Translations under genes and position numbers: made by a program | Part shown: piece after piece, positions 4,753-39,345 of the stretch | Layout of the letters: the number at the start of each line of letters is the position of its first letter | How positions within the stretch are numbered: position 1 is the first letter of the stretch | NCBI GenBank assembly: GCA_002269645.1 | Contig: NIVC01001324.1 | Location: 1-40,817 of the forward strand | Direction of reading: 5' to 3' | DNA length: 40,817 nucleotides | Source of the DNA: Macrostomum lignano | Lineage: Eukaryota | Notes under the pieces: model-generated | Database searches by the model: none | The model's input: only the letters and a program-made list of their open reading frames with translations | Told to the model about the DNA's origin: nothing

Positions 4753-5233
4753 GCCGATGACCCACCAGTGAGAGGTGAAAACGGCGGCGACCCGGACGCA
4801 GTCGATATTGAAGAGTCGGACACGAGGTGCTCCATTCGGCTTGCCCAGTTGTCATTTTTTATCAACTTAGCATTGGCTATCATCAAAGGCACCGCCATCG
4901 CTCTGTCCGGCTCATTATCTGTTGTCTCTTCGCTAATTGATTCGCTAATTGATCTAGTCAGCGGTATCGTTGTTTGGATCGCTAATCGGCAGGTGAAATC
5001 CCGGAATCCTTATTATTATCCGCAGGGCAAGACTCGCCTGGAACCCATCGCTATTGTCATTCTGGCCGTTATCATGTCCACGTCTACAATTCAGATTATT
5101 ATTAAAGCTATCGAGTCTATTGTCAATATGGCCATGGACACTAAGACTGTAGCCAGCAATGCCAGTTTCTGTTTATGCGACAATGATGCTAATGGTTCCG
5201 TGTTCGTCTCCGGACTGGCAGCGGGCCACGGTG
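4753..5233 (+). CDS. Mn-type CDF, exon with TM1-TM3
   Basis: Acceptor CCTCAAG (4751-52) in phase 0. Encodes SLIDSLIDLVSG (TM2 DxxxD) and YPQGKTRLEP. Donor G|GTAGGT at 5234 is phase 1 and matches the next acceptor. Confidence 0.9.
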
Positions 5234-5344
5234 GTAGGTCGCTGACTTGTACGCCTGCATATTTTCTAGAACTGTCTTACGGAAGCGACTAGTGTGTCTC
5301 ACGTTGTCCAGATGTGTCTTTTCGTGAATAGTTCTTGTTTTTGT

Positions 5345-8300
5345 TAGATGGTCCGTGTGTCTCATGGTAGATGGTCCGTGTGTCTCATGGTAGATTATCC
5401 GTGTGTCTCATGGTAGATGGTCCGTGTGTCTCATGGTAGATTATCCGTGTGTCTCACGGTAGATGGTCCGTGTGTCTCATGGTAGATGGTCCGTGTGTCT
5501 CATGGTAGATGGTCCGTGTGTCTCATGGTAGATTATCCGTGTGTCTCATGGTAGTTATCCGTGTGTCTCATGGTGATTATCCGTGTGTCTCATGGTCCCC
5601 GTGTGTCTCATGGTAGATTATCCTCATGGTAGATGGTCCGTGTGTCTCATGGTAGATGGTCCGTGTGTCTCATGGTAGATTATCCGTGTGTCTCATGGTA
5701 GATTATCCGTGTGTCTCATGGTAGATTATCCGTGTGTCTCATGGTAGATGGTCCCCGTGTGTCTCATGGTAGATTATCCGTGTGTCTCATGGTAGATTAT
5801 CCGTGTGTCTCATGGTAGATGGTCCGTGTGTCTCATGGTAGATTATCCGTGTGTCTCATGGTAGATGGTCCGTGTGTCTCATGGTAGATTATCCGTGTGT
5901 CTCATGGTAGATGGTCCATGTGTGTCTCATGGTAGATGGTCCATGTGTCTCATGGTAGATGGTCCGTGTGTCTCATGGTAGATTATCCGTGTGTCTCATG
6001 GTAGATTATCCGTGTGTCTCATGGTAGATTATCCGTGTGTCTCATGGTAGATGGTCCCGTGTGTCTCATGGTAGATTATCCGTGTGTCTCATGGTAGATG
6101 GTCCGTGTGTCTCATGGTAGATTATCCGTGTGTCTCTTGGTAGATTATCCGTGTGTCTCATGGTAGATTATCCGTGTGTCTCATGGTAGATGGTCCCGTG
6201 TGTCTCATGGTAGATTATCCGTGTGTCTCATGGTAGATTATCCGTGTGTCTCATGGTAGATTATCCGTGTGTCTCATGGTAGATGGTCCGTGTGTCTCAT
6301 GGTAGATTATCCGTGTGTCTCATGGTAGATGGTCCGTGTGTCTCATGGTAGATTATCCGTGTGTCTCATGGTAGATGGTCCATGTGTGTCTCATGGTAGA
6401 TGGTCCATGTGTCTCATGGTAGATTATCCGTGTGTCTCATGGTAGATTATCCGTGTGTCTCATGGTAGATGGTCCGTGTGTCTCATGGTAGATGGTCCGT
6501 GTGTCTCATGGTAGATGGTCCGTGTGTCTCATGGTAGATGGTCCGTGTGTCTCATGGTAGATTATCCGTGTGTCTCATGGTAGATTATCCGTGTGTCTCA
6601 TGGTAGATGGTCCGTGTGTCTCATGGTAGATGGTCCGTGTGTCTCATGGTAGATTATCCGTGTGTCTCATGGTAGATTATCCGTGTGTCTCATGGTAGAT
6701 TATCCGTGTGTCTCATGGTAGATGGTCCGTGTGTCTCATGGTAGATTATCCGTGTGTCTCATGGTAGATGGTCCGTGTGTCTCATGGTAGATTATCCGTG
6801 TGTCTCATGGTAGATGGTCCATGTGTGTCTCATGGTAGATGGTCCATGTGTCTCATGGTAGATGGTCCGTGTGTCTCATGGTAGATTATCCGTGTGTCTC
6901 ATGGTAGATTATCCGTGTGTCTCATGGTAGATTATCCGTGTGTCTCATGGTAGATGGTCCCCGTGTGTCTCATGGTAGATTATCCGTGTGTCTCATGGTA
7001 GATGGTCCGTGTGTCTCATGGTAGATTATCCGTGTGTCTCTTGGTAGATTATCCGTGTGTCTCATGGTAGATTATCCGTGTGTCTCATGGTAGATGGTCC
7101 CGTGTGTCTCATGGTAGATTATCCGTGTGTCTCATGGTAGATGGTCCGTGTGTCTCATGGTAGATTATCCGTGTGTCTCATGGTAGATTATCCGTGTGTC
7201 TCATGGTAGATGGTCCCCGTGTGTCTCATGGTAGATGGTCCGTGTGTCTCATGGTAGATTATCCGTGTGTCTCATGGTAGATGGTCCCCGTGTGTCTCAT
7301 GGTAGATTATCCGTGTGTCTCATAGTAGATGGTCCATGTGTCTCATGGTAGATTATCCGTGTGTCTCATGGTAGATGGTCCCCGTGTGTCTCATGGTAGA
7401 TTATCCGTGTGTCTCACGGTAGATGGTCCGTGTGTCTCCTGGTAGATTATCCGTGTGTCTCATGATAGATGGTCCCCGTGTGTCTCATGGTAGATGGTCC
7501 GTGTGTCTCATGGTAGATTATCCGTGTGTCTCATGGTAGATGGTCCGTGTGTCTCATGATAGATGGTCCGTGTGTCTCATGGTAGATTATCCGTGTGTCT
7601 CATGGTAGATTATCCCTGTGTCTCATGGTAGATTATCCGTGTGTCTCATGGTAGATTATCCGTGTGTCTCATGGTAGATGGTCCCGTGTGTCGTATGGTA
7701 GATTATCCGTGTGTCTCATGATAGATGGTCCCCGTGTGTCTCATGGTAGATGGTCCGTGTGTCTCATGGTAGATTATCCGTGTGTCTCATGGTAGATGGT
7801 CCCCGTGTGTCTCATGGTAGATTATCCGTGTGTCTCATGGTAGATGGTCCCCGTGTGTCTCATGGTAGATTATCCGTGTGTCTCATGGTAGATGGTCCGT
7901 GTGTCTCATGGTAGATTATCCGTGTGTCTCATGGTAGATTATCCGTGTGTCTCATGGTAGATGGTCCCGTGTGTCTCATGGTAGATGGTCCGTGTGTCTC
8001 ATGGTAGATTATCCGTGTGTCTCATGGTAGATGGTCCGTGTGTCTCATGATAGATGGTCCGTGTGTCTCCTGGTAGATTATCCGTGTGTCTCATGATAGA
8101 TGGTCCCCGTGTGTCTCATGGTAGATGGTCCGTGTGTCTCATGGTAGATTATCCGTGTGTCTCATGGTAGATGGTCCGTGTGTCTCATGATAGATGGTCC
8201 GTGTGTCTCATGGTAGATTATCCGTGTGTCTCATGGTAGATTATCCGTGTGTCTCATGGTAGATTATCCGTGTGTCTCATGGTAGATTATCCGTGTGTCT

Positions 8301-11300
8301 CATGGTAGATGGTCCCCGTGTGTCGTATGGTAGATTATCCGTGTGTCTCATGATAGATGGTCCCCGTGTGTCTCATGGTAGATGGTCCGTGTGTCTCATG
8401 GTAGATTATCCGTGTGTCTCATGGTAGATGGTCCCCGTGTGTCTCATGGTAGATTATCCGTGTGTCTCATGGTAGATGGTCCGTGCGTCTCATGGTAGAT
8501 TATCCGTGTGTCTCATGGTAGATGGTCCCCGTGTGTCTCATGGTAGATTATCCGTGTGTCTCATGGTAGATGGTCCGTGTGTCTCATGGTAGATTATCCG
8601 TGTGTCTCATGGTAGATTATCCGTGTGTCTCATGGTAGATGGTCCCCGTGTGTCTCATGGTAGATGGTCCGTGTGTCTCATGGTAGATTATCCGTGTGTC
8701 TCATGGTAGATTATCCGTGTGTCTCATGGTAGATTATCCGTGTGTCTCATGGTAGATGGTCCGTGTGTCTCATGGTAGATTATCCGTGTGTCTCATGGTA
8801 GATGGTCCGTGTGTCTCATGGTAGATTATCCGTGTGTCTCATGGTAGATGGTCCATGTGTGTCTCATGGTAGATGGTCCGTGTGTCTCATGGTAGATTAT
8901 CCGTGTGTCTCATGGTAGATGGTCCCCGTGTGTCTCATGGTAGATTATCCGTGTGTCTCATGGTAGATGGTCCGTGTGTCTCATGGTAGATTATCCGTGT
9001 GTCTCATGGTAGATTATCCGTGTGTCTCATGGTAGATGGTCCCCGTGTGTCTCATGGTAGATGGTCCGTGTGTCTCATGGTAGATTATCCGTGTGTCTCA
9101 TGGTAGATGGTCCCCGTGTGTCTCATGGTAGATTATCCGTGTGTCTCATGGTAGATGGTCCGTGTGTCTCATGGTAGATTATCCGTGTTTTTCATGGTAG
9201 ATGGTCCCCGTGTGTCTCATGGTAGATTATCCGTGTGTCTCACGGTAGATGGTCCGTGTGTCTCCTGGTAGATTATCCGTGTGTCTCATGATAGATGGTC
9301 CCCGTGTGTCTCATGGTAGATGGTCCGTGTGTCTCATGGTAGATTATCCGTGTGTCTCATGGTAGATGGTCCGTGTGTCTCATGATAGATGGTCCGTGTG
9401 TCTCATGGTAGATTATCCGTGTGTCTCATGGTAGATTATCCGTGTGTCTCATGGTAGATTATCCGTGTGTCTCATGGTAGATTATCCGTGTGTCTCATGG
9501 TAGATGGTCCGTGTGTCGTATGGTAGATTATCCGTGTGTCTCATGATAGATGGTCCCCGTGTGTCTCATGGTAGATTATCCGTGTGTCTCATGGTAGATG
9601 GTCCGTGTGTCTCATGGTAGATTATCCGTGTGTCTCATGGTAGATTATCCGTGTGTCTCATGGTAGATGGTCCCGTGTGTCTCATGGTAGATGGTCCGTG
9701 TGTCTCATGGTAGATTATCCGTGTGTCTCATGGTAGATGGTCCCCGTGTGTCTCATGGTAGATTATCCGTGTGTCTCATGGTAGATGGTCCGTGTGTCTC
9801 ATGGTAGATTATCCGTGTTTTTCATGGTAGATGGTCCCCGTGTGTCTCATGGTAGATTATCCGTGTGTCTCACGGTAGATGGTCCGTGTGTCTCCTGGTA
9901 GATTATCCGTGTGTCTCATGATAGATGGTCCCCGTGTGTCTCATGGTAGATGGTCCGTGTGTCTCATGGTAGATTATCCGTGTGTCTCATGGTAGATGGT
10001 CCGTGTGTCTCATGATAGATGGTCCGTGTGTCTCATGGTAGATTATCCGTGTGTCTCATGGTAGATTATCCGTGTGTCTCATGGTAGATTATCCGTGTGT
10101 CTCATGGTAGATTATCCGTGTGTCTCATGGTAGATGGTCCCCGTGTGTCGTATGGTAGATTATCCGTGTGTCTCATGATAGATGTGTCTCATGGTAGATT
10201 ATCCGTGTGTCTCATGGTAGATGGTCCGTGTGTCTCATGGTAGATTATCCGTGTGTCTCATGGTAGATGGTCCCCGTGTGTCTCATGGTAGATTATCCGT
10301 GTGTCTCATGGTAGATGGTCTCCCGTGTGTCTCATGGTAGATTATCCGTGTGTCTCATGGTAGATGGTCCGTGTGTCTCATGGTAGATTATCCGTGTGTC
10401 TCATGGTAGATTATCCGTGTGTCTCATGGTAGATGGTCCGTGTGTCTCATGGTAGATGGTCCGTGTGTCTCATGGTAGATTATCCGTGTGTCTCATGGTA
10501 GATGGTCCGTGTGTCTCATGATAGATGGTCCGTGTGTCTCCTGGTAGATTATCCGTGTGTCTCATGATAGATGGTCCCCGTGTGTCTCATGGTAGATGGT
10601 CCGTGTGTCTCATGGTAGATTATCCGTGTGTCTCATGGTAGATGGTCCGTGTGTCTCATGATAGATGGTCCGTGTGTCTCATGGTAGATTATCCGTGTGT
10701 CTCATGGTAGATTATCCGTGTGTCTCATGGTAGATTATCCGTGTGTCTCATGGTAGATTATCCGTGTGTCTCATGGTAGATGGTCCGTGTGTCGTATGGT
10801 AGATTATCCGTGTGTCTCATGATAGATGGTCCGTGTGTCTCATGGTAGATGGTCCGTGTGTCTCATGGTAGATTATCCGTGTGTCTCATGGTAGATGGTC
10901 CCCGTGTGTCTCATGGTAGATTATCCGTGTGTCTCATGGTAGATGGTCCGTGCGTCTCATGGTAGATTATCCGTGTGTCTCATGGTAGATGGTCCCCGTG
11001 TGTCTCATGGTAGATTATCCGTGTGTCTCATGGTAGATGGTCCGTGTGTCTCATGGTAGATTATCCGTGTGTCTCATGGTAGATTATCCGTGTGTCTCAT
11101 GGTAGATGGTCCCGTGTGTCTCATGGTAGATGGTCCGTGTGTCTCATGGTAGATTATCCGTGTGTCTCATGGTAGATGGTCCGTGTGTCTCATGATAGAT
11201 GGTCCGTGTGTCTCATGGTAGATTATCCGTGTGTCTCATGGTAGATTATCCGTGTGTCTCATGGTAGATGGTCCGTGTGTCTCATGGTAGATTATCCGTG

Positions 11301-12350
11301 TGTCTCATGGTAGATGGTCCGTGTGTCTCATGGTAGATTATCCGTGTGTCTCATGGTAGATTATCCGTGTGTCTCATGGTAGATGGTCCCCGTGTGTCTC
11401 ATGGTAGATGGTCCGTGTGTCTCATGGTAGATGGTCCGTGTGTCTCATGGTAGATGGTCCCCGTGTGTCTCATGGTAGATTATTCGTGTGTCTCATGGTA
11501 GATGGTCTCCGTGTGTCTTATGGTAGATTATCCGTGTGTCTCATGGTAGATGGTCCGTGTGTCTCATGGTAGATTATCCGTGTGTCTCATGGTAGATTAT
11601 CCGTGTGTCTCATGGTAGATTATCCGTGTGTCTCATGGTAGATGGTCCGTGTGTCTCATGGTAGATTATCCGTGTGTCTCATGGTAGATTGTCCGTGTGT
11701 CTAATGGTAGATTATCCGTGTGTCTCATGGTAGATTATCCGTGTGTCTCATGGTAGATGGTCCCCGTGTGTCTCATGGTAGATGGTCCGTGTGTCTCATG
11801 GTAGATTATCCGTGTGTCTCATGGTAGATGGTCCCCGTGTGTCTCATGGTAGATTATCCGTGTGTCTCATGGTAGATGGTCCGTGTGTCTCATGGTAGAT
11901 TATCCGTGTGTCTCATGGTAGATGGTCCCCGTGTGTCTCATGGTAGATTATCCGTGTGTCTCACGGTAGATGGTCCGTGTGTCTCCTGGTAGATTATCCG
12001 TGTGTCTCATGGTAGATGGTCCCCGTGTGTCTCATGGTAGATGGTCCGTGTGTCTCATGGTAGATGGTCCGTGTGTCTCATGGTAGATTATCCGTGTGTC
12101 TCATGATAGATGGTCCGTGTGTCGTATGGTAGATTATCCGTGTGTCTCATGATAGATGGTCCCCGTGTGTCTCATGGTAGATTATCCGTGTGTCTCATGG
12201 TAGATTATCCGTGTGTCTCATGGTAGATTATCCGTGTGTCTCATGGTAGATTATCCGTGTGTCTCATGGTAGATTATTCGTGTGTCTCATGGTAGATGGT
12301 CCGTGTGTCTTATGGTAGATGGTCCGTGTGTCTCACGGTAGATGGTCTGT
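5345..12350. repeat. About 7-kb satellite of 23(-25)-bp units GTGTGTCTCATGGTAGA(TTATCC|TGGTCC), roughly 300 copies, inside the CDF intron
   Basis: Directly visible. Two main variants are interspersed, and rare variants recur at about 630-bp spacing. Confidence 0.99.
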
Positions 12351-12396
12351 GTCCCATCGACCCGTTTCTAAGCGAATGGTCCTTTGCATTTTGCAG

Positions 12397-12965
12397 ACTA
12401 TGGCACCAGCTGGGGCTCCGTGTTCGGGCTGATCGGATCCGTGATCATTCTCAAGCTGTTTCTATTCATTCTGTGCCACAGGCTTGGCACTACATCAAGC
12501 ACTGGGGCCCTGGCTCTGGACCATCGCAACGACTGCGTATCCAACGCCACCGTGCTCATCATGACGGTGCTGTCGGCCTATGTCTGGCCCTACTTCGACG
12601 CGATTGGAGCTCTGGCCATCAGTGTCTATATTATTTACACCTGGGCGGAGACGCTGAAGCAGCAGATCCGGCTGCTAACGGGGTACACGGCCGATTCTGA
12701 ATACCTGAAGCAGATTATCTTTATCTGCGTCAATCATCACCCACTGATCCAGCAGCTGGAAACCGTGCGAGCATTTCACATTGGCAACAACTATCTGGTT
12801 GAGGTGGACATTGTTGTGCCAGGTGATTTAGCCCTGCGCGAGGCGCACGATATAGGCGAGAGTCTGCAGCGCAAACTGGAGCGCTTGGGCGGTGTAGAAC
12901 GGGCGTTTGTTCACGTGGATTACGAGTTCATGCACCACCCCAGCACTGAGCACAAGCAGGTGTGA
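12397..12965 (+). CDS. Mn-type CDF, last exon (TM4-TM6 and cytosolic dimerisation domain)
   Basis: Acceptor TTTGCAG (12395-96), phase 1. Encodes ALDHRNDC (TM5), WPYFDAIGA, EVDIVVP...EAHDIGESLQRKLE and VERAFVHVDYE, all typical of the MTP8-11 C-terminus. Stop TGA at 12963-65. The three exons total 1194 nt in frame. Confidence 0.95.
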
Positions 12966-13060: not shown

Positions 13061-13125
<65 letters not shown>

Positions 13126-13126
13126 G

Positions 13127-13215
<89 letters not shown>

Positions 13216-13218
13216 TAG

Positions 13219-13255
<37 letters not shown>

Positions 13256-13258
13256 TAG

Positions 13259-13291
<33 letters not shown>

Positions 13292-13337
13292 TAGTGTCTG
13301 TCTGTCTGTCTGTCTGTCTGTCTTAGTGTCTGTCTTA

Positions 13338-13407
<70 letters not shown>

Positions 13408-13408
13408 A

Positions 13409-13481
<73 letters not shown>

Positions 13482-13518
13482 GGCTGTCTGTCTGTCTCTG
13501 GCTGGCTGTCTGTCTCTG
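13061..13518. repeat. (TCTG)n microsatellite, about 110 units with TTAG interruptions
   Basis: Directly visible. It accounts for the TDRQ and CLSV ORFs. Confidence 0.99.
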
Positions 13519-16969: not shown

Positions 16970-18162
16970 AGCTTTTCAAGAGGAGAAAATGCATAAAATA
17001 TTAAAAGTTGTTTAAGGAATGATTTGAGAAGAATGCCAAAATTTTTGGTATAAGAAACTAAAAAGTTTTGTTTTATGTTAAATAAGCAAATGTGCTTATT
17101 GCCTATTTTTCTTAAGATTTTAAAATCCTAGGCCTGTGTTATATATGCTTATATATACTTTGACAACTTGTTACCTTAAAACTTTTATGTACTTTTATTA
17201 TATTGAAATTTTATAATCTAAATCTCTAGATTGAAAAAAAGTATATTAATTCATTATAATGAAATAGGTGACAGTCATTATTATTTTGTTATAATGAAAT
17301 AATTTAATTATTATACTATAAATGCTACTATTGTAGAAAAGTTTAATAAAGTTATATAAAATTCAACTAAAATGACAATAAAAGCCTAAAATATAATATT
17401 ATTCTTGGTAAAGACTTTTCTTTCAGAGTACTTTTACTTTTATATACCTTTTAATATTATCTATCACTAGTATTAGCATAGCCTTTTATGTAATCATTTT
17501 TTTCTTATCAGTTTTAATAATATTTTAATAAATATTTTGATGTGTACTTTTTTTTCTAATATATAGAAAAGAAAGACTCCAAGCTAAACAGGCTCTAACA
17601 ATGCTTTTCCCAACCAAGGCAGATAAATGAAAATTGATACAATTAGCGTCTGCTTCATTAATTTGCAAATCTAATCATTTGCATTTTGCATAGCTGCCCT
17701 CAGTCATGCTTGACTATATTTTAGTCTCAGATTAATACAACAGCAAAGCTTAATTGATATTCTCTAGAATTGTTCCAAAACTAAAATTGGGGCACTGTTA
17801 AACAGAATTTATAGCATTCCATACTGAATGCTTTGCTTTTAAGAATTTATGAGGAAAATTTATAATTAAGTTATATAACTATTTTTTTAAAGCCTCTCAT
17901 TTGGTGTGAATTGAAATTCATCAAGCGAACAATTCTATAGAACAGTCAGTATTTGCTATTAGGCTGAGCATTAGTCACGTGACTAGCTGGCTTAGAGAAC
18001 AGCCTGGCACAGCATGACTGAGTGATCCAGCCAGCAAAAGAAGCATCGGCTAATCCCCTTCTGCCTCCCCACCTGCCCGCCATCTCTCGCCGCTGCCGCC
18101 GCCGCCGCTGCCGCAGGTCGTCCGCCAGTCTGGCCTCGTCTATAACCGACGCCGACGATCGC

Positions 18163-18741
18163 ATGTCGGTTTCGTCGAATTCGACACTCGACCCGCCAAG
18201 GCCACTCGGATTGGCCGCTATGCGTCGGCTGCGTCCTAGGCGACCGTTGCCAAGGCAACAACAGCAGCACCAGCAGCACCAAGGCGGTGGCGGAGGTGGC
18301 AGCGTCTACGGCAGGCCCGGCAAGCGCTGGAAGCGCCGCCAGGTGAACGAGGCCTACCTGCACAGCCTGGCGGCCGTGGCCGAGGTCACGGACGAAGACG
18401 TGTCCGGCTGTCCGTGGCCAGAGTCGCCTCTGTCCAGCCTGTTCCTAGACCCCGCCCAGATGCTGGCCTGGCGTCAGTTCAACGAATTAACGGACGAACA
18501 GCAGGCCGACTTTCTGGCCAAAGCCGGCGGCGACAAGGACGAGGAGGAGGAGCAGCTGGCGGAGGACGCCGAGCTGAAGGCGGTGCTGGTGCAGCCGGCC
18601 GGCGGGGTGGCCACCGCCGGCCAGGCCTGGAGCCGCCTGAGCGCCACCTGCCGGGACTTTGCGCTGCACCGAGCAACACCGGGTAGCCGCTTCCATGCCG
18701 AACTTGGCAGGCTGGAGACCGAGCTGCGGGACCTGTTCCAG
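18163..18741 (+). CDS. R3HDM4: R3H domain-containing protein 4-like, exon 1 (R3H-associated domain)
   Basis: GKRWKRRQVNEAYL, AWRQFNELTDEQQADFL and AWSRLS...LETELRDLF parallel R3HDM4 as recalled. Donor CAG|GTGAGC at 18742, phase 0. Start codon uncertain (ATG 18163, 18219 or further upstream). Confidence 0.75.
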
Positions 18742-18780
18742 GTGAGCCGGGAGTTACCAGTGGCTACGAGGTATCCATGG

Positions 18781-18940
18781 CTACTGATTGACAGGTGGGT
18801 GAGAGGGCAGGTGGCATGAGGTACTGATTGACAGGTGGCAGTGAGGGAGAGGTGGCATGAGAGGTACTGATTGACAGGTGGCAGTGAGAGGTACTGATTG
18901 ACAGGTGGCAGTGAGAGGTACTGATTGACAGGTGGCAGTA
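18781..18940. repeat. About 27-bp minisatellite (GAGGTACTGATTGACAGGTGGCAGTGA), about 5 copies, in the R3HDM4 intron
   Basis: Directly visible. Confidence 0.85.
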
Positions 18941-19590: not shown

Positions 19591-21053
19591 AAATAAATGA
19601 ATTGGATTTATTGATTAACGATGAAGTCCTATGTTACACATCGCAGATAATATTTTAACTGACTAAAGACTATCGGAATGGCACTCTTATCATTAATGTA
19701 TCGCACGCTACTCGTTTTCGCAGAGTTAGTTTTCTTTATGGAATTATTATGGTACTTTACAGTACAATATGTAATTTTAAAGCTGTGCTTGAATTTTAAT
19801 GTTCGGTTTGTTTTTGATTTTTAGTTTTGTTGGTTTTTAGTTGGCTGTTTGTGTTTTTTTAGCTTTGTTATTTAGCTACAACAATCCAAGTCAGAGCTAA
19901 CTGTATTTGTTTTAAATTTCTGCTAATTTATTCGTCAATAGAAAGTCCGAGTCAGACTACTAAGAGTAGCAAAAGTAAAAAATTGGGGCATGCCGCCTCT
20001 GCTTGTTGTCATCAAATACCTTAGTGATAGATTTCCTAAAGTACGTGTAATATAGTACTCTCAGTAGCTTATCGTACCAATACTAACGTACACCATCGAA
20101 CAGAGCCTGCTTCCTTTCATACTTTATCGGTGTTGGTGTGTACTAATTTTATAGTCATTAAGAAATAATGAACTCATACTCTGATGCTAATTAATGTTAA
20201 TATACGAGTAATTGGAATGCAATATGCCTATTAATTTGCGGTAATGTCGAACCCTTATGTAATCGAAAATCACGCACTGGACTGCTCATTATTTTTCCAT
20301 TGCTTTACTGGTTTTGTTGGCCAGTTATAGTAAGAGATCACCTACTGAAAAGTAGTAACCAAAGAATATTGTAGTTTTTGCAAGGTTGCGCAATAATTAT
20401 TAAAGAAAAGCTGCAAGCCTGTGCGTGTCCACAGGTGAAGTCCGGGCTTAGCGGCTATGCCCACGGCGTGTACATGCACATGTAGGTAGAATATAAACGG
20501 GAGAAATGCGGATTCTGTTTGCTAATTACACTACACTAGGGACACTACATGTAGGACAAATTCAGTTCATGTAAATGTACTTTTATAGAAGTGAAATCGC
20601 CATGATGCTGATGTTTTTTAATAACTGACTGCGCTTAATTTTGTTTTTGGCTAGCAGTTGATCTAGTACATGTAGGTACTGTAGCTTTCAGAGGCGATAT
20701 CAATTATAGGCTTTGTGCTGGCGGTTATCAGCACCAGAGCCTATTCGACCTGCACATTCCGATTGGTTTCTGCGACCTAATTAACAAATACAAGTCCGAT
20801 GTCAATCATAAAAGCTTTATTTATAGCACCTCCAACCAAATCGATAGATTTTTCAAACGCATTTTTTTCACAGTTGCGAATGAAAGCAGAAAATACATTA
20901 AAGTATCACCAGTCAATTTTCGAATCAACCTTGAAAAAAATGCTTTTAAATATCTGATGCGTGAGTCTGACAAAGGATTGTAGAGAAAACCACCACCACA
21001 GAGAGGGGGTGACTGCTTCAGCCAACTAAACAAACAATAGTTGTTCTATAAAG

Positions 21054-21195
21054 CAAGAGTCGGTAAACTTTTTTATCTCAAGGGCCAGACGAAGAATCCA
21101 GCTCATGGCGGCCAGATGAGAGAGGAAAGGAGAGGAAAGGCGAGGATCGACGAGAGGAGCTTGAGAGGAGAGGAGAGAGAAGAGCTGAGAGAGAC
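21054..21195 (+). mobile_element. Dispersed non-autonomous element, copy A, with a hAT-like terminus and purine-rich body
   Basis: Begins CAAGAGTCGGTAAACTTTTTT...AAGGGCCAGA, resembling hAT/Charlie-type ends. Shares ATCCAGCTCATGGC..GGCCAGATGAGAG...AGCTGAGA.GAGAC with the reverse complement of 40102-40263. Confidence 0.6.
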
Positions 21196-21340
21196 CTTAA
21201 GCCCTTGGCTCAAGGTGAAACTGACAGTTTATAATGCTGCTGATAAGTTCAAACTGGTTGCAACTGTAACAACCATTCACAACTACTGTATTGTCTCTGG
21301 AATCATTGCAGCTATGCAAGTAGCCCAGAGCACACCTGCT

Positions 21341-21984
21341 CTAGCAATAGCAGTCGTCTAAGCTGCGACTCAGACAGCGGGCAATGGAAGAGCCGGCATT
21401 CTTGAAAAAGGTGACGCCGAAAGCGAAATGCCAGCTGTCGCGGCCCAGCGCACCTTTGACGCTTGGCTTCCAAGTAGGCTGCTTCTCGCAGACGGGTCCC
21501 TCTTCTTCCTTGCTGTCGTTTTCTTTATCGCCGTCCGATTCGCTGTCGACGCTGGAGTCCCGCCTCCGACTTCGCGGCAGCAGAGCCAGCAGCTGCTGAC
21601 GGTGGATCTTCGAGTCCGTCGGCCCACGGTCGAGGACGCGGAATTCGCAGCCGTCAGCTTGGCCAGCCGAAGCGATCCATGATTGAATTTCGGTTAAGAC
21701 GGCGGACATTGCGGCTTCGCTTGGAACGGTTGGAGAGGCGGCACTGGCGGAGGCTGCCGGCTTCAGAATCAGGCGGTACTCCGGCGACCCGACCACACGG
21801 ACGGTCAGCTCGTGTCCGACAGCGGCAGCGGCGGCTTTGCCGGCTTTGAAAGCCGATTTTATTAGCTCGACACCCACTGGCGAATACAAGCAGGTCAGGT
21901 GGACCAGGCAGTGCAGCTCCCGGACTGAAATCCAGCGATGGAGGCTTTGGCAGTGCGGGAGAATTCGGTAGATATTCTGCGGCA
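21341..21984 (-). CDS. Divergent eIF2-alpha-like protein, last exon (C-terminal alpha/beta domain, acidic tail, extra extension)
   Basis: LTCLYSPVGVELIKSAFKAG...LTVRVVGSPEYRL...AMSAVLTEIQSWI...GCEFRV...SVDSESD parallels eIF2-alpha VACYGYEGIDAVKEALRAG...IKINLIAPPRYVM...VLSQAMAVIKEKI...GVFNV...EVDGDDD. Phase-1 acceptor TCCCCAG at 21986-85. Confidence 0.75.
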
Positions 21985-22074
21985 CTGGGGAACCCTTAAG
22001 GATGTGAGGTACGGAGTAAGATGCATGCAGGAACCATAAGTAGGTAATAAAGTCACGTGAGACACCAAAAGTAG

Positions 22075-22175
22075 GCAATAAACGCCAGGTGTGACACTAA
22101 ACGCCAAGTGAGGCACTAGAACGCCAGATGAAGCACTAAAAACACCAGATAAAGCACTAAAAACGCCAGGTAAGG
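22075..22175. repeat. Short degenerate repeat (CACTAAAAACGCCAGG-like), about 5 copies, in the eIF2-alpha-like intron
   Basis: Directly visible. Confidence 0.6.
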
Positions 22176-22241
22176 TACTTACCTGGTGAGCTTACTGTCT
22201 AAGATTCTATTTTACTATTTAACACCCGTACTTGGCCTTAC

Positions 22242-22630
22242 CCAAAGATTCTTTGGAAGCAGCAGCAACCTCAGCGGCATTCAAAGTCTCAGCCAAGCCG
22301 CTATTCCAGCTGTCGTTGAAGCGCCCGCTCTTCCCATAGAATAGCCGGCCAGCCAGCCTCTGAGCCTTGCGATTGATGGAGCGCGCAGCTAGAAACGCGT
22401 CTACAAACTGTTCGGGATTATCCAACCAGTGTCCGAGCTGCTGGAGTCTCAGCCATAGCCGCTTTGGCACTAGCGAGATTGGCGGATTGGCCAGGTACAA
22501 ACTGCGAGACAGCGCCAGCAGCTGCTCAATAGCCGAGGCTACGGCCGTAAGTGAGCCGCGAACCAGAGCCACTTTGGCCAATGTGAAAGCCACAGACTGG
22601 CTGCATTCGGTCATCAGTGCCAGAGGAGTG
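22242..22630 (-). CDS. eIF2-alpha-like protein, helical-domain exon
   Basis: Acceptor ATATTTCAG (22632-31, phase 2) and donor G|GTAAGG (22241, phase 1, matching the next exon). TECSQSVAFTLAK.LVRGSLTAVASAI and FVDAFLAA parallel [24 protein letters not shown] and AYDAFKHA. Confidence 0.65.
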
Positions 22631-23010
22631 CTGAAATATCATTTGCATGCCAAGCCGAGATTTTGAAAGCGAACCACGACCCGCAGAAACCTCTCCCATC
22701 TATGAATCAAAGAAATAAGAAAGGAAGAAAGGAGCATATGAGAAAGTTTTCCCGCAATCTTCGCTCCTAAATTCAGGCAGTCTGTAGTCCGTGAAACATG
22801 CAGCTTGTAGACAGCCACAGGCGATTGTTGAAGCTTCAAAAACTTTAAAAATGTCTAGAAAATTGTACTAGTTTTTTTCATTTTTCTACACGAACAAAAA
22901 CGCTAATTTTGGTACTGAAAAGAGTAGATGAGCGCATTCTTTGCGAGTGACACAACTGGTTATTAGATAGATACAAAGACGCTGACGAGTCAAAGACCCT
23001 TAGTGCTCAC

Positions 23011-23495
23011 ACGCTCGCGAAAAAGTTCAGAGGGACAGGGAGTGGCCTCAAGCGGGGTGAGGTGAATAGCCTGAAGGTCACTACCAGCAAAGGTCTTTAT
23101 TCTTTGTTAGAAACGTCTCAATGCGCGAATGTCCGCGACGGTATGGGTCGCATGGCGAATTGAGCACGACGACCGCTTGGGGGGGGGGGGTTTCATTTCC
23201 CTGCGTCTGTGGCTGGGTAGCACACGGCCAAGAATGATCTGGTTATTCTGGGGTTCAAAGCAGCGCCTTTTTAGGCCTCTTCGAGATGTCGGAACGTCAA
23301 GTGCTCGAGTCTGTTTCGACTGTAGGACCTGTGTCGATGCCTTCAACTTTAACACAATGAAAATGGACATCAAAGATCGCACTGCTCAGTGGTAAACGCG
23401 TCTGACTCGCGCCACAACACCTGGTTCGATTCCCCTGAGCGGCCGCATTCATTTGAGGATCGCGAACAAAAAACTGGCCGTGGGGGTGTACATGT
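23011..23495 (-). pseudogene. Disrupted segment with the end of KH2 and the S1-like domain of the eIF2-alpha-like protein; needs at least 2 frameshifts and contains a tRNA-like insert
   Basis: Three frames give consecutive pieces: IVLKLKASTQVLQSK..GLKRRCFEPQNNQIILGRV, then AVVVLNSPCDPYRRGHSRIETFLTKNKD after the G12 run (23179-90), then LLVVTFR...NFFASV up to donor GTGAGC at 23010 (phase 2). Assembly error cannot be told apart from real pseudogenisation here. Confidence 0.45.
23375..23447 (+). other. Decayed tRNA-like / SINE-head sequence
   Basis: A-box-like TGCTCAGTGGTA (23383) and B-box GGTTCGATTCC (about 23423) at tRNA-like spacing. The stems pair poorly, so it is not a functional tRNA. 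Confidence 0.45.
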
Positions 23496-23552
23496 CTGAC
23501 GATCGGGCAGAATCGATTCGATTTTGAACTAAGAAACTCCACATTTACTCAC

Positions 23553-23669
23553 TCAAAAATAAACACTTTGGCGTGGCTCTCGAATTGGATATTCTTGATC
23601 GTGACGCCGCCGCGACCGACAATTTTGCCGACGTGTGCCGGGTCGAGCAGCATGCGCAGAGTGGACGGC
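23553..23669 (-). CDS. KH domain 2 exon (hnRNP K/PCBP-like)
   Basis: Encodes LRMLLDPAHVGKIVGRGGVTIKNIQFESHAKVFIFE, a type I KH with an intact GxxG loop. Acceptor CACTCCAG (23671-70; alternative at 23731-30) and donor GA|GTGAGT (23552). Confidence 0.85.
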   Translation of the reverse strand, partial: AVHSAHAARPGTRRQNCRSRRRHDQEYPIREPRQSVYF

Positions 23670-23769
23670 CTGGAGTGGGGAATAGAGGCACTTGTTAGAG
23701 AATTATGGCATAGCAATGCAAACTTTGTTCTAGAAAGTATGAAGAAAAAATAATAATATTTTAGCACAC

Positions 23770-23855
23770 CTGTCGGAGTTACCGCTGCACATGTTTTTCA
23801 ACAGGCGCCTGCAAGCAGCCGAGCAGGTCTCAGTGTCGCCGAACAGCTGGAGAAT
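23770..23855 (-). CDS. KH domain 1, second half (small exon)
   Basis: Acceptor CTCTACGCAG, then ILQLFGDTETCSAACRRLL (beta3-alpha3 of a KH). The phase-2 donor AG|GTGTGC joins in frame to the KH2 exon. Confidence 0.7.
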
Positions 23856-23967
23856 CTGCGTAGAGACAAGTGAGACAAAGTGAGTCATTTATGGGAAGAC
23901 TGTCTGTGCTTGCTTTCATATCCACAGGAACCCGAAAAAAACTAAATTAAAAAATCAACATTTTTGA

Positions 23968-24270
23968 GCGGTCATGAGGGGAGAGAAACGCTGGCCTGGC
24001 CTGATGCAAAATGTCACACGAGCGCGCACTGCGTAGCTACAGTGGGGCATAAAAAACTACACCGCATCTATGTAGGTTAGAAATCCTATACTGAACACCA
24101 AGGTTTAACAGGCGACAAGATGTCATGGACACCAATATTTGACAGGCGACAAGATGTCATGGACACCAATATTTAACAGGCGACAAGATGTCATGGACAC
24201 CAATATTTAACAGGCGACAAGATGTCATGGACACCAATATTTAACAGGCGACAAGATATCCTGGACACTA
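23968..24270. mobile_element. Dispersed element copy 1: about 140-bp unique head plus about 5 units of a 33/34-bp minisatellite, in intron 1 of the KH gene
   Basis: GAGCGGTCATGAGGGGAGAGA...GCACTGCGTAGCTACA...CACCAAGGTTTAACAGGCGACAAGATGTC is nearly identical to the sequence from 25297 onward. Confidence 0.8.
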
Positions 24271-24424
24271 AAATTTATTGTACGACAGAAAGGATTTCGG
24301 ATGAATATTCACTGTCCCAAAGAGCGTTCCAAACACAACTAACAGATGTTACGATCAGTATGACAAAAATATCACATTAGGTCGACTTATTTCACACAAA
24401 CATGAACGGTGCAGCGTTACACAC

Positions 24425-24643
24425 GAATTTGGCAGGATTCGCTGAATCAGATTCTTGCAACTGATCGTGAATAATGAGAAATTTGGCGCGAATCTCTGCG
24501 CTACCACTGTTGAAATTTGACGCCCGCATTGCCAGTACATGCGCCTGCGCCGCGGTCAAGGCCAGGCGCAGAGGATATGGCTCAGTAGAATTCATTCCTA
24601 GCGATGAGCCTGAAGCATGCATTTGAGTCAGTAGAAAAGTCAT
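24425..24643 (-). CDS. KH domain 1, first half (degenerate GxxG); probable first coding exon
   Basis: Encodes YPLRLALTAAQAHVLAMRASNFNSGSAEIRAKFLII. The phase-0 donor TTC|GTGTGT at 24424 fits the next exon. The start could be 24643, 24622 or 24595. Confidence 0.5.
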
Positions 24644-25296: not shown

Positions 25297-26610
25297 GCGG
25301 TCATGAGGGGAGAGAGAAGCGCTGGTCTGGCCTGATGCAAAATGCCACACGAGCGCGCACTGCGTAGCTACATTAGGGGGCATAAAAAACTACACCGCAT
25401 CTATGTAGGTTAGAAATCCTATACTGAACACCAAGGTTTAACAGGCGACAAGATGTCATGGACACCGAGATTAACATGCGACAAGATGTCCTTGACACCA
25501 AGATTAACAGGCGACAAGATGTCCTGGACACCAAGATTAACATGCGACAAGATGTCTTGACACCAAGATTAACAGGCGACAAGATGTCCTGGACACCAAG
25601 ATTAACATGCGACAAGATGTCCTTGACACCAATATTAACAGGCGACAAGATGTCCTGGACACCAAGATTAACATGCGACAAGATGTCCTTGACACCAAGA
25701 TTAAGAGGCGACAAGATGTCTTGGACACCAATATTTAACAGGCGACAAGATGCCCTGGACAGCAATATTTAACAGGCGACAAGATGTTTTGGACACCAAT
25801 ATTAAACAGGCGACAAGATGTCTTGGACACCAATATTTAAGAGGCGACAAGATTTCTTGGACACCAAGACTAACAGGCGACAAGATGTCTTGGACACTAA
25901 TATTTAACAGGCGACAAGATGTCTTGGACATCAATATTTAACAGGCGACAAGATGTCTTGGACATCAAGATTAACAGGCGAAAAGATGTCTTGGACACCA
26001 AGATTAACAGGCGACAAGATGTCTTGGACACCAAGATTAACAGGCGACAAGATGTCTTGGACACCAAGATAAACATGCGACAAGATTTCCTTGACACCAA
26101 GATTAACAGGCGACAAGATGTCCTGGACACCAAGATTAACATGCGACAAGATGTCCTTGACACCAAGATTAACAGGCGACAAGATGTCCTGGACACCAAT
26201 ATTTAACAGGCGACAAGATGTCCTGACACCAAGACTAACAGGCGACAAGATGTCTTGGATATAAAGATTAACAGGCGACAAGATGTCTTGGACACCAAGA
26301 TTAACATGCGACAAGATGTCCTTGACACCAAGATTAACAGGCGAGAAGATGTCCTGGACACCAATATTTAACAGGCGACAAGATGTTTTGGACACCAATA
26401 TTAAACAGGCGACAAGATGTTTTGGACACTAATATTTAACAGGCGACAAGATTTCTTGGACACCAAGATTAACAGGCGACAAGATGTCCTGGACCCCATA
26501 TTTAACAGGCGACAAGATGTCATGGACACTAATATTTAACAGGCGACAAGATGTCATGGACACCAATATTTAACAGGCGACAAGACGTCCTGGACAACCA
26601 AGATTTAACA
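25297..26610. mobile_element. Dispersed element copy 2: same head plus about 35 units of the 33/34-bp minisatellite (AACAGGCGACAAGATGTCCTGGACACCAAGATT)
   Basis: Directly visible; the array spans 25438-26610 and accounts for the repetitive ORFs there. Confidence 0.85.
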
Positions 26611-27430
26611 GGAATCGTGTCCTGTGGTAATTTCTATAGCGGCTCAGTGCAAACTGGATTTCGGTTCAATTTTACGAGCTCAATAACCATCAAGCTAAAT
26701 ATTTTCAATCCCCCGATTAAAATTAGAAAATATAAAAAAAATATTTTGTTTTTGGTTTATGGGCGCTGGCTGGCCTGACAAATACTACTGCACTGCACTC
26801 TAATATTAGACTTTTGGTCGCAACAGTGGAAGCGAACAAAAAAGCAAAAGACAAGACAATAGCAAAAAGCTCAAAAAATTTTCACTAAAAGATGTAAATT
26901 CAAAACGGCTTGTATTTTTTCCGCAGAAAAGCTGACAAAAAACAAAGTAACATCGATGTAGAAACGAAAAAACAGAGGTTTGGGGAGTGAAAAAGGAAAG
27001 GGGAACTGATAATGCAACTATTAAAGACAAATGCAAACAATAAACAGACTATTCTAAACTTCTTGTAAACAATTATAGATATAATATTACTAGAAGCTGC
27101 TATTAAGACTGAATTGTGAAAAATTCTAATGTTCGGCAAACAAGGCCAACGCACAGAATAACGATATAAACCGACACTGATAGAAAAAGCACATCTTATC
27201 CGTAAATAAAGTCCAACAGCATAGAGGTCCAACAAACTGGAAGATGATTCAATTAACGCCTAACTGAACAAAACAAACTGCTTCGATAAAAAAGAAGCCA
27301 AATTTCTTTGTTTGTTTTGTTTATTACTCGTTTAAATCAAAATGTGGTTAACAAAGAAAAAGAACAAAACGAATTTGTTTAGTGTCTGATGCACTCCGAA
27401 CTATTGATTGAAACGTTTCCACTTCAATGT

Positions 27431-28136: not shown

Positions 28137-28498
28137 GGTACGAGAAAGTGGATAGCAGTCCTCCAAGGTGGACGAGAAAGTGGATAGCAGTCCTCCAAGG
28201 TGGACGAGAAAGTGGATAGCAGTCCTCCAAGGTGGACGAGAAAGTGGATAGCAGTCCTCCAAGGTGGACGAGAAAGTGGATAGCAGTCCTCCAAGGTGGA
28301 CGAGAAAGTGGATAGCAGTCCTCCAAGGTGGACGAGAAAGTGGATAGCAGTCCTCCAAGGTGGACGAGAAAGTGGATAGCAGTCCTCCAAGGTGGACGAG
28401 AAAGTGGATAGCAGTCCTCCAAGGTGGACGAGAAAGTGGATAGCAGTCCTCCAAGGTGGACGAGAAAGTGGATAGCAGTCCTCCAAGGTGGACGAGAA
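28137..28498. repeat. 32-bp minisatellite (ACGAGAAAGTGGATAGCAGTCCTCCAAGGTGG), about 11 near-perfect copies, in TRIM intron 2
   Basis: Directly visible; period 32. Confidence 0.97.
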
Positions 28499-38736: not shown

Positions 38737-39345
38737 ATGCCAACAGTTATGAACAGCGGCAAGAAGCGAATCTCTACCGTATCGGCTCCGAGTCCCAGCC
38801 AGCTGAAGCCGTCAAACGCTGGCAAAGGGTCGCCAGACGGTCCGGATGAAGCAGGACCGGCTAGGCCAAAAGCGGCCGGCGGGACGCCTCGGCCAAAACA
38901 GCTGAGCCTGGCGACCCTCATGATGCTCAAGAAGCGGATCGGCGACATCCGGGCGAGGCACCGACGCAACCGACCCGTCAAGAAGATGGAGAACACCTAC
39001 CGCCTAGAGCCGGACTCGACTAAGAAGTTCCCGCCGAAGGAGGTGCAACAAATCGTGGACAACAGCCTCAGATTCTTCCTCGGAGAGTCCAAGTACGATC
39101 CGAAGGCGTGTCCCAAGCTGGCCAAAATGGTCTCCGAGGACGTGAAGCGCAGGATGAAAAACAACTACAACTGTCCTCGCTATAAGATTATTGTTCATGT
39201 GACGATCGCGCAGAAATCCGAGCAGATTCTAATGCAGGCATCCCGGTCTGTGACCGACCCCGCCACTGACGACTTTGTGACTGGCTTGCTAGAGAGGCCA
39301 ACCTTCAGAGCTAGCGCGACTGCCTTCTGGATCTACTGCGAGTGA
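38737..39345 (+). CDS. Tctex1-domain dynein light chain (TCTEX1D/DYNLT4-5-like) with a basic N-terminal extension, single ORF
   Basis: MENTYRLEP..KKF, YDPKACPKLAKMVSEDVKRRMK, PRYKIIVHVTIAQ and ASATAFWIYCE are the characteristic Tctex-1 motifs. Confidence 0.92.
   Translation: MPTVMNSGKKRISTVSAPSPSQLKPSNAGKGSPDGPDEAGPARPKAAGGTPRPKQLSLATLMMLKKRIGDIRARHRRNRPVKKMENTYRLEPDSTKKFPPKEVQQIVDNSLRFFLGESKYDPKACPKLAKMVSEDVKRRMKNNYNCPRYKIIVHVTIAQKSEQILMQASRSVTDPATDDFVTGLLERPTFRASATAFWIYCE

Follow-up and report, generated by a model that had tools for sequence, protein, structure and literature searches.

Does the genome of the flatworm Macrostomum lignano encode a protein in which RNA-binding KH domains are joined to a relative of the translation initiation factor subunit eIF2-alpha, and, if so, how much of that subunit can still be recognized in it? 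The question is raised by a minus-strand gene at 21341-24643 of contig NIVC01001324.1 (NCBI GenBank assembly GCA_002269645.1), which was analyzed within a window of 40,817 nucleotides (positions 1 to 40,817 of the contig, the whole stretch of DNA considered here, to which all coordinates refer) consisting of repeat-rich eukaryotic DNA. eIF2-alpha is among the most conserved single-architecture proteins of eukaryotes and archaea, and, to our knowledge, partial copies of it are known only from viruses and retain the S1 end. The gene studied here is a real, transcribed chimera, so far seen only in M. lignano, and its architecture comprises a degenerate KH1, KH2, a short helical region (possibly derived from domain 2 [D2] of eIF2-alpha), a domain resembling eIF2-alpha domain 3 (D3), an acidic tail, and an orphan extension of 51 residues. 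We put at about 70% the probability that this real gene joins an IGF2BP/IMP-type KH1-KH2 didomain to a strongly diverged eIF2-alpha remnant whose module is derived from D3. A preliminary description, made from the sequence alone, had proposed two KH domains followed by an S1-like segment, a helical domain, and an eIF2-alpha-like C-terminal domain; the fusion of KH domains to a highly diverged eIF2-alpha-like module stood, and the S1-like segment did not.

Gene structure and deposited record

A search whose query was the C-terminal exons, stitched together, matched one cluster only, with 100% identity. This cluster is represented by GenBank PAA69434.1 ([quoted passage not shown] 451 amino acids) and contains four more M. 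lignano entries that are nearly identical (two from UniRef and Mlig005067g1/g2). When the deposited protein was mapped back to the window and the borders were refined, the gene resolved into five minus-strand exons, every intron being GT..AG with a pyrimidine-rich acceptor. The joined exons form an open reading frame (ORF) of 1,395 nucleotides that encodes 464 amino acids if the ATG at 24643 is the start, and PAA69434.1, which is 5'-partial and begins at 24604, is contained within it. This candidate ATG directly follows an acceptor-like ...tttatagC, which could be a trans-splice site. The phase-compatible minus-strand exons of the preliminary description are borne out by the GT..AG borders and the joined frame of 464 codons, and its borders for 23669-23553 and 22630-22242 agree exactly with the mapped protein. 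The parts of the gene are as follows.

24643-24425, minus strand: exon 1, N-terminal half of KH1, with AMRA at the GXXG position (24532-24521)
23855-23770, minus strand: exon 2, beta'/alpha' of KH1 (ILQLFGDTETCSAACRRLLKNM) and the KH1-KH2 linker
23669-23553, minus strand: exon 3, N-terminal half of KH2 (beta1-alpha1-GRGG-alpha2-beta2), with GRGG at 23617-23606; ends in phase 2 (GA)
23552-22631, minus strand: intron 3, skipped by the annotated transcript model and non-coding there
22630-22498, minus strand: exon 4, first part, KH2 variable loop, beta', and alpha' (DTPLALMTECSQSVAFTLAKVALVRGSLTAVASAIEQLLALS)
22497-22242, minus strand: exon 4, second part, predicted helical region of ~85 residues; the exon ends in phase 1
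21924-21623, minus strand: exon 5, first part, alpha/beta domain resembling eIF2-alpha domain 3, with the Pfam EIF_2_alpha match at 21916-21767
21568-21497, minus strand: exon 5, acidic Ser-rich stretch RRRDSSVDSESDGDKENDSKEEEG, read directly off the sequence
21496-21341, minus strand: exon 5, C-terminal extension of 51 residues, with the stop codon TAG at 21343-21341

The GenBank models of this assembly come from a genome-guided transcriptome built with StringTie/TACO on RNA sequencing (RNA-seq) data plus a de novo assembly, with ORFs called by TransDecoder (PMC5730564). Because the models were built from RNA-seq and transcript assemblies, the join from 23553 to 22630 reflects transcript evidence, in the form of deposited annotation rather than of individual reads; the link between 23669-23553 and 22630-22242, which the preliminary description had left to transcript data, is present in the RNA-seq-derived model. 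Moreover, the fusion is physical and does not rest on splicing alone, because the end of KH2 and the helical region share a single exon, exon 4 (22630-22242), in which they are read in one continuous frame. What was known before is that the gene had been deposited as a hypothetical protein with both Pfam domains flagged automatically (PAA69434.1 is already annotated with PF00013 [KH_1] and PF07541 [EIF_2_alpha]); what is new is pointing it out and correcting its anatomy.

A second locus (L001), on a 468-kb contig, also carries this gene, with a RING-finger gene and an R3H-associated gene as its neighbors, and confirms the KH/eIF2-alpha-like arrangement. The two genomic copies are almost identical, introns included, so that a comparison of exon and intron conservation between them is without power. 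The differences comprise 3 nucleotides in the length of a C12 run (~23185-23196), a 4-nucleotide block substitution at 24617-24620 in the putative 5' coding part (MHAS...), and a sharp divergence past the stop codon (20900-21340), with 29 substitutions and 51 indel columns in 441 nucleotides.

A KH didomain of the IGF2BP/IMP type

On sequence comparison, the N-terminal half is a didomain of the IGF2BP/IMP type, with one canonical KH domain (KH2) and one degenerate KH domain (KH1). Pfam KH_1 matched exon 23669-23553 (E = 3.2e-8, profile positions 1-35 of 66), and in a PDB sequence search residues 52-172 aligned to the KH didomains of IGF2BP1 and IGF2BP3, to KH1-2 of PCBP2, and to Nova (E from 3e-6 to 4e-4), the IGF2BP3 alignment reaching residue 172. 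In pairwise comparison, an IMP1-like protein aligned with residues 11-173 (27% identity, E = 2e-11), its GQGG standing opposite AMRA in KH1 and its RAGG opposite GRGG in KH2, while a four-KH IMP-like protein (P0022) aligned with residues 65-232 (E = 9e-11), with MTECSQ opposite MTDCTQ in the KH2 variable loop and the alignment running on through KH2 beta'/alpha' VALVRGSLTAVASAIEQLL. Exon 2 aligned with KH1 of IGF2BP1/3 ("tpEgCSsACk.iLe.M"), and the beta'/alpha' half of KH2, residues 128-172, is encoded by the start of exon 4 (~133 nucleotides, 22630-22498). KH2 thereby shows the beta-alpha-alpha-beta-beta-alpha order and the GXXG loop (GRGG) of a type I KH domain and aligns over the whole domain to the KH domains of IMP, PCBP, and Nova proteins; KH1 aligns end to end as a KH domain, but AMRA replaces GXXG. 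The GXXG loop needed for canonical RNA binding is thus kept in KH2 only. Both KH domains of the preliminary description hold up, the degenerate KH1 through its full alignment to the IMP1-like protein, with AMRA opposite GQGG, and the intact KH2 with its GRGG loop through the Pfam and PDB matches.

An exhaustive phmmer search of 1.84e9 representative proteins gave 237 matches at E <= 1e-3, and among the 150 best the best-matching stretches all lay within residues 11-235. Of the ten top matches that were looked up, some carry no source name; the named ones are IGF2BP proteins, with two exceptions, a "KH domain-containing protein" and an unnamed dinoflagellate transcript ORF. The relatives that were scanned have four or five KH domains (three in one shorter fragment), some of them with an RRM in addition, and the true IMP-like matches combine RRM_1 with four KH_1 domains. 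The match to P0022 that seemingly reached residue 235 was set aside, since this is an ordinary IMP-like protein with four KH domains and its apparent extension consists of a gapped tail. A BLASTP match of residues 3-74 (24598-23814) to residues 215-287 of human eIF2-alpha (E = 0.01, "GMN-STEPYPLRLAL" opposite "GLNCSTENMPIKINL") was likewise put down to coincidence, since a much better alignment is obtained when this segment is read as an IMP-type KH1.

The arrangement of residues 11-173 as KH-linker-KH is that of IMP KH1-KH2, and the KH1 helix "E.CS.AC" and the KH2 loop "MT.C.Q" are conserved in the M. lignano protein. In contrast, the IGF2BP/IMP family (ZBP1, Vg1RBP) is built from two RRMs and four KH domains (KH1-2 and KH3-4), whereas the M. 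lignano protein has two KH domains and no RRM match, a KH1 without GXXG, an identity of 24-27%, and a C-terminal half unrelated to IMPs. Judged by these features, it is related to the IMP KH1-2 didomain, yet does not belong to the IGF2BP/IMP family.

The eIF2-alpha-like C-terminal half

The Pfam family PF07541 matched residues 261-310 (21916-21767) at 25.7-27.1 bits (E ~1e-5), above the family's gathering score of 22.8, the match covering 50 residues at profile positions 59-108 of 114 and leaving positions 1-58 unmatched. Among the NCBIfam families, the C-terminal half was matched best by three archaeal aIF2-alpha models, which chose the same residues as PF07541 (NF003064, E = 3.7e-5; NF003065, E = 2e-3; NF003063, E = 9e-3), with 13-23 bits against the cutoffs of 252-432 of these equivalog models, scores that fall short of equivalence to the whole-protein family. 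AlphaFold was run twice, template-free and with no eIF2-alpha input, once with the whole protein (five near-identical sequences) and once with only residues 170-375, and both models have a beta-alpha-beta-beta-alpha-beta order at residues 261-358 (block-mean predicted local distance difference test score [pLDDT] of 56-87). When the two models were compared with the PDB by Foldseek, the top 16 and the top 14 matches, respectively, were all e/aIF2-alpha (E values of 3e-5 to 7e-3). With most of the full-length or D2-D3 chains, the alignment extended over 182-226 columns with a root mean square deviation (rmsd) of 10-17, and D3-only chains gave template modeling (TM) scores of 0.65-0.66, with an rmsd of 3.2-3.3 for archaeal 2qn6_B and of 6.1-6.5 for human 8qzz_B. 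Thus, the Pfam, NCBIfam, and Foldseek results all favor the C-terminal domain that the preliminary description had aligned by eye with eIF2-alpha: a Pfam match above the cutoff lies within its interval 21341-22630, at 21916-21767, and the best PDB matches of both models are e/aIF2-alpha chains. Domain 3 of e/aIF2-alpha is recognizable at the domain level only, and the sequence evidence for it is marginal.

Ahead of this domain, residues 182-255 are predicted to be helical (pLDDT of <50), and MAFFT sets NPEQ opposite SPEE (NPEQFVDAF... opposite SPEEAIKCEDKF...), a placement that makes the helical region ~35 residues shorter than canonical domain 2. It is possible, on weak evidence, that the region is a shortened counterpart of eIF2-alpha domain 2. 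The helical domain that had been proposed earlier is kept in part: predicted helices over ~85 residues remain, at low confidence, while its first 45 residues (128-172, about one-third) form the second half of KH2.

Two positional features were also compared with eukaryotic eIF2-alpha. An acidic Ser-rich stretch DSSVDSESDGDKENDSKEEEG comes directly after the D3-like domain, followed by 51 further residues, and an acidic C-terminal tail is characteristic of eukaryotic eIF2-alpha (PMC3553985), so that the M. lignano protein shares this extension. Exons 4 and 5 are separated by a phase-1 intron that splits the first codon of VRELHC-LVHLTC. In Capitella, Lingula, and Acanthaster, the eIF2-alpha genes have in common an intron that is likewise in phase 1 and, at the D2/D3 border, interrupts the codon for the D of "DIEVAC"; the gene of the sea anemone Actinia is without it. 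The M. lignano and bilaterian introns lie 0-7 codons apart, depending on the Cys chosen for the alignment, and the matching phase is no more than suggestive of eIF2-alpha ancestry. Together, the acidic tail and the phase-1 intron fit such an ancestry. The Capitella, Lingula, and Acanthaster genes have further common introns after residues 80, 107, and 156. The 51-residue extension itself had no detectable relatives in the Pfam scan or among the 150 best of the 237 phmmer matches, and its AlphaFold pLDDT was <35.

In comparison with canonical eIF2-alpha (eIF2S1/SUI2; archaeal aIF2-alpha), the M. lignano protein shares a domain-3-like beta-alpha-beta-beta-alpha-beta module with helices before it, whereas the canonical protein consists of S1, helical domain 2, and alpha/beta domain 3, and the M. 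lignano protein is without S1 and Ser51 and carries the additional 51-residue C-terminal extension. For the C-terminal half, a word-indexed search returned no protein other than the gene's own cluster, and the phmmer search of the 1.84e9 representatives returned no second protein, only KH-region matches being present among the 150 best of 237. The full-length canonical eIF2-alpha proteins among the 120 matches listed carried PF00575 and PF07541, and none of them had a KH domain. A literature search returned no KH plus eIF2-alpha architecture, and the terms for eIF2-alpha-like proteins or paralogues and PF07541 retrieved only viral S1-type mimics and plant eIF2-alpha homologues.

Alternative explanations of the chimera

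Several observations weigh against the reading of the gene as an IMP-type didomain joined to an eIF2-alpha remnant, and they are considered here together with the alternatives on which they bear. A first alternative accepts the anatomy and holds the chimera to be real but young, and functionless or becoming a pseudogene, having arisen when exons were shuffled in a repeat-rich genome that was recently duplicated, and evolving neutrally. We consider it rather unlikely. It would be in keeping with the absence of any orthologue from the 1.84e9 representative proteins and from 5.8e9 clusters, with the loss of GXXG from KH1 and of most eIF2-alpha invariant residues, with the shortened domain 2, and with the satellites that surround the locus; no expression pattern or phenotype was found in print either, the locus tags being absent from the full-text literature and from the supplements of two M. 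lignano studies. In addition, the two copies are essentially identical. However, the 464-codon frame is intact over five well-spliced exons and in at least two genomic copies, the gene model is derived from transcripts, and KH2 keeps all its hallmark features. Moreover, if the C-terminal half does derive from eIF2-alpha, an identity of ~17% is hard to square with very young neutral drift and an open frame.

According to a second alternative, which in our estimate is quite unlikely, the gene encodes a KH-didomain protein with an unrelated or unrecognizably old ferredoxin-like C-terminal half, whose likeness to eIF2-alpha is a chance profile match combined with a common fold, and the protein is unconnected with eIF2. 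Pairwise and profile-profile comparisons were indeed not significant: BLASTP against human eIF2S1 (a sequence checked by its 97-99% identity to vertebrate eIF2S1 entries) gave 17% identity with E = 0.17, an hhalign comparison with 15 eIF2-alpha sequences from metazoans picked out the same region with E = 0.049 and a probability of 1%, a narrow hidden Markov model (HMM) of metazoan eIF2-alpha gave E = 1.4, phmmer of the PDB returned no eIF2-alpha at E <= 10, and the Pfam match is confined to its 50 residues. Metazoan eIF2-alpha proteins are at least 68% identical among themselves, whereas the M. lignano module is at ~17% and, when the C-terminal half is added to the metazoan alignment with MAFFT, keeps 13 of the 66 metazoan-invariant positions (9 of 34 within D3). 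Such divergence fits the "fast-evolving paralog" of the preliminary description, and with most invariant positions gone, binding to eIF2-gamma may well have been lost. The structural evidence is qualified in the same direction, since the AlphaFold models are poor overall (mean pLDDT of 42 and 57, with <50 in the helical region), their input was effectively one sequence, and AlphaFold may be echoing a local sequence motif. Furthermore, designed ferredoxin folds superpose on the D3-like domain with TM scores of 0.63-0.69 and an rmsd of 3.0-5.4, comparable to aIF2-alpha D3, so that the fold alone is not diagnostic of eIF2-alpha.

Against a chance resemblance, four independently built e/aIF2-alpha profiles agree on the residues they choose and rank highest among the families of two libraries. 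The Foldseek E values for e/aIF2-alpha (3e-5 to 1e-3) are up to ~100-fold better than those for generic ferredoxin folds, the weakest e/aIF2-alpha matches overlapping the best designed folds, and most alignments to full-length or D2-D3 chains take in the preceding helices as well. Moreover, the acidic tail and the phase-1 intron are placed as in eIF2-alpha. We prefer the reading of a strongly diverged eIF2-alpha remnant behind an IMP-type KH didomain.

Intron 3 and the proposed S1 segment

The S1-like segment of the preliminary description had been placed in the ORF at 23382-23107, which is open for 91 codons and lies inside intron 3 of the transcript-derived model. At E <= 10, neither the exons nor this ORF matched S1 (PF00575) in Pfam, and the ORF had no other relevant Pfam match. 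When the whole window, translated in six frames, was scanned with the eIF2-alpha HMM at E <= 100, the ORF was likewise absent from the matches, none of which was to the S1 region. The idea that this frame runs from KH-like beta3/alpha3 into S1 also had to be given up, the second half of KH2 being encoded by the start of exon 4 instead. The S1-like exon was accordingly rejected as intronic, dissimilar to S1 and eIF2-alpha, and bound to interrupt KH2; the S1 domain and the Ser51 loop are absent, with the KH didomain in their place.

That an alternative isoform might still contain part of this ORF, with an S1-like exon separating the KH part from the eIF2-alpha-like part, as the 91 open codons and a few arbitrary combinations of AG..GT cassettes preserving the exon 3/exon 4 frame could suggest, is close to refuted, because there is no S1 or eIF2-alpha similarity even at these very permissive thresholds, any such cassette would break KH2 by inserting basic, proline-rich residues between its beta2 and beta' elements, none of the five deposited models contains the ORF, and the ORF holds the length-variable C12 run (near 23185-23196) and adjoins a tRNA-like fragment. 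This fragment lies on the plus strand at ~23384-23440 of intron 3 (GCTCAGTGGTAAAC...GGTTCGATTCC). It received no ARAGORN call, had no Rfam match at the gathering or E <= 1 thresholds, and had no other copies in the window or at the second locus. A tRNA gene or a short interspersed nuclear element was rejected on these grounds, and the element is kept as a tRNA-like fragment.

Possible function and comparison with partial eIF2-alpha copies

In e/aIF2, a rigid core is formed by gamma, domain 3 of alpha, and beta's N-terminal helix; the contact between alpha and gamma is made mainly via two loops of D3, and D1-D2 of alpha are mobile and take part in tRNA binding (PMC3553985). Because domain 3 is the part of alpha that is rigidly bound to gamma, the likeliest partner of the D3-like module, acting as a protein-docking surface, would be eIF2-gamma, or else a new partner. 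KH2 would bind single-stranded RNA, with the degenerate KH1 serving as a scaffold, and the protein would either recruit its bound mRNAs to eIF2 or compete for the gamma subunit with canonical eIF2-alpha, out of reach of regulation by the eIF2-alpha kinases. We infer docking on eIF2-gamma only tentatively and regard it as somewhat doubtful. The fuller proposal is improbable, namely, that the protein might be an alternative eIF2 alpha-like subunit or adaptor whose D3-like module sits on gamma, replacing or competing with canonical alpha, while the KH didomain selects mRNAs and the lack of Ser51 makes it blind to the integrated stress response.

In canonical eIF2-alpha, Ser51, the kinase docking surface, and much of the contact with eIF2B are located in the S1 domain. 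The preliminary description had suggested that the protein could tether an eIF2-like module to mRNAs or serve as a decoy for eIF2 kinases. Tethering to RNA through domain 3 is possible, judging from the domains present; the kinase decoy is unsupported, the S1 domain with Ser51 and the docking surface being absent. Having neither S1 nor Ser51, the protein cannot be a kinase pseudosubstrate. Poxvirus K3 and ranavirus vIF2-alpha, which we take to retain S1 and to act as PKR pseudosubstrates, resemble the M. lignano protein in that they, too, have retained just a portion of eIF2-alpha, which serves them outside the canonical factor. They differ in the part that is kept, the M. lignano protein having the opposite end (D2-D3) without S1. 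No S1 domain that would mimic the PKR-binding surface was detected in it by Pfam or the eIF2-alpha HMM, and the PKR-pseudosubstrate mechanism is inapplicable because S1 is absent.

If the reading of an IMP-type didomain joined to an eIF2-alpha remnant is true, a cellular paralogue that keeps the gamma-binding end and has the regulated S1 domain swapped for KH domains with sequence-specific RNA binding would represent an unusual experiment of nature in how initiation factor 2 can be rewired. Should gamma binding be retained, an mRNA-targeted, stress-insensitive delivery or sequestration of eIF2 would be testable in a flatworm with RNA interference and transgenesis, and the adaptor proposal, if true, would amount to a route of mRNA-specific initiation or repression. 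Should gamma not be bound, the protein would exemplify the drift of a core translation factor domain after exon shuffling.

Genomic surroundings

Other genes and repeats were observed around the locus. A 33/34-bp tandem-repeat family occurs at 25424-26612 (35.6 copies), upstream of the KH gene, and at 24095-24277 (5.4 copies), in its intron 1, and yields long spurious ORFs, e.g., 25373-25765 and 25931-26398. Farther upstream, a perfect 32-bp tandem repeat (100% identical, 11.2 copies, 28140-28498) stands between two ORFs of a minus-strand gene, at whose place the second locus has the RING-finger gene. On the plus strand, a gene for a protein with an R3H-associated N-terminal domain lies at 18022-18819, and a gene for a Tctex-1 family dynein light chain lies at 38737-39345. 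A (TCTG)n microsatellite of ~114 copies extends over 13061-13515. The exon-like plus-strand ORFs 4768-5292 and 12384-12965 belong to a Cation_efflux/ZT_dimer (zinc-transporter-like) gene, and between them lies a 7-kb array (5345-12343) of a 23-bp satellite in ~301 copies, apparently a giant satellite-filled intron of this gene.

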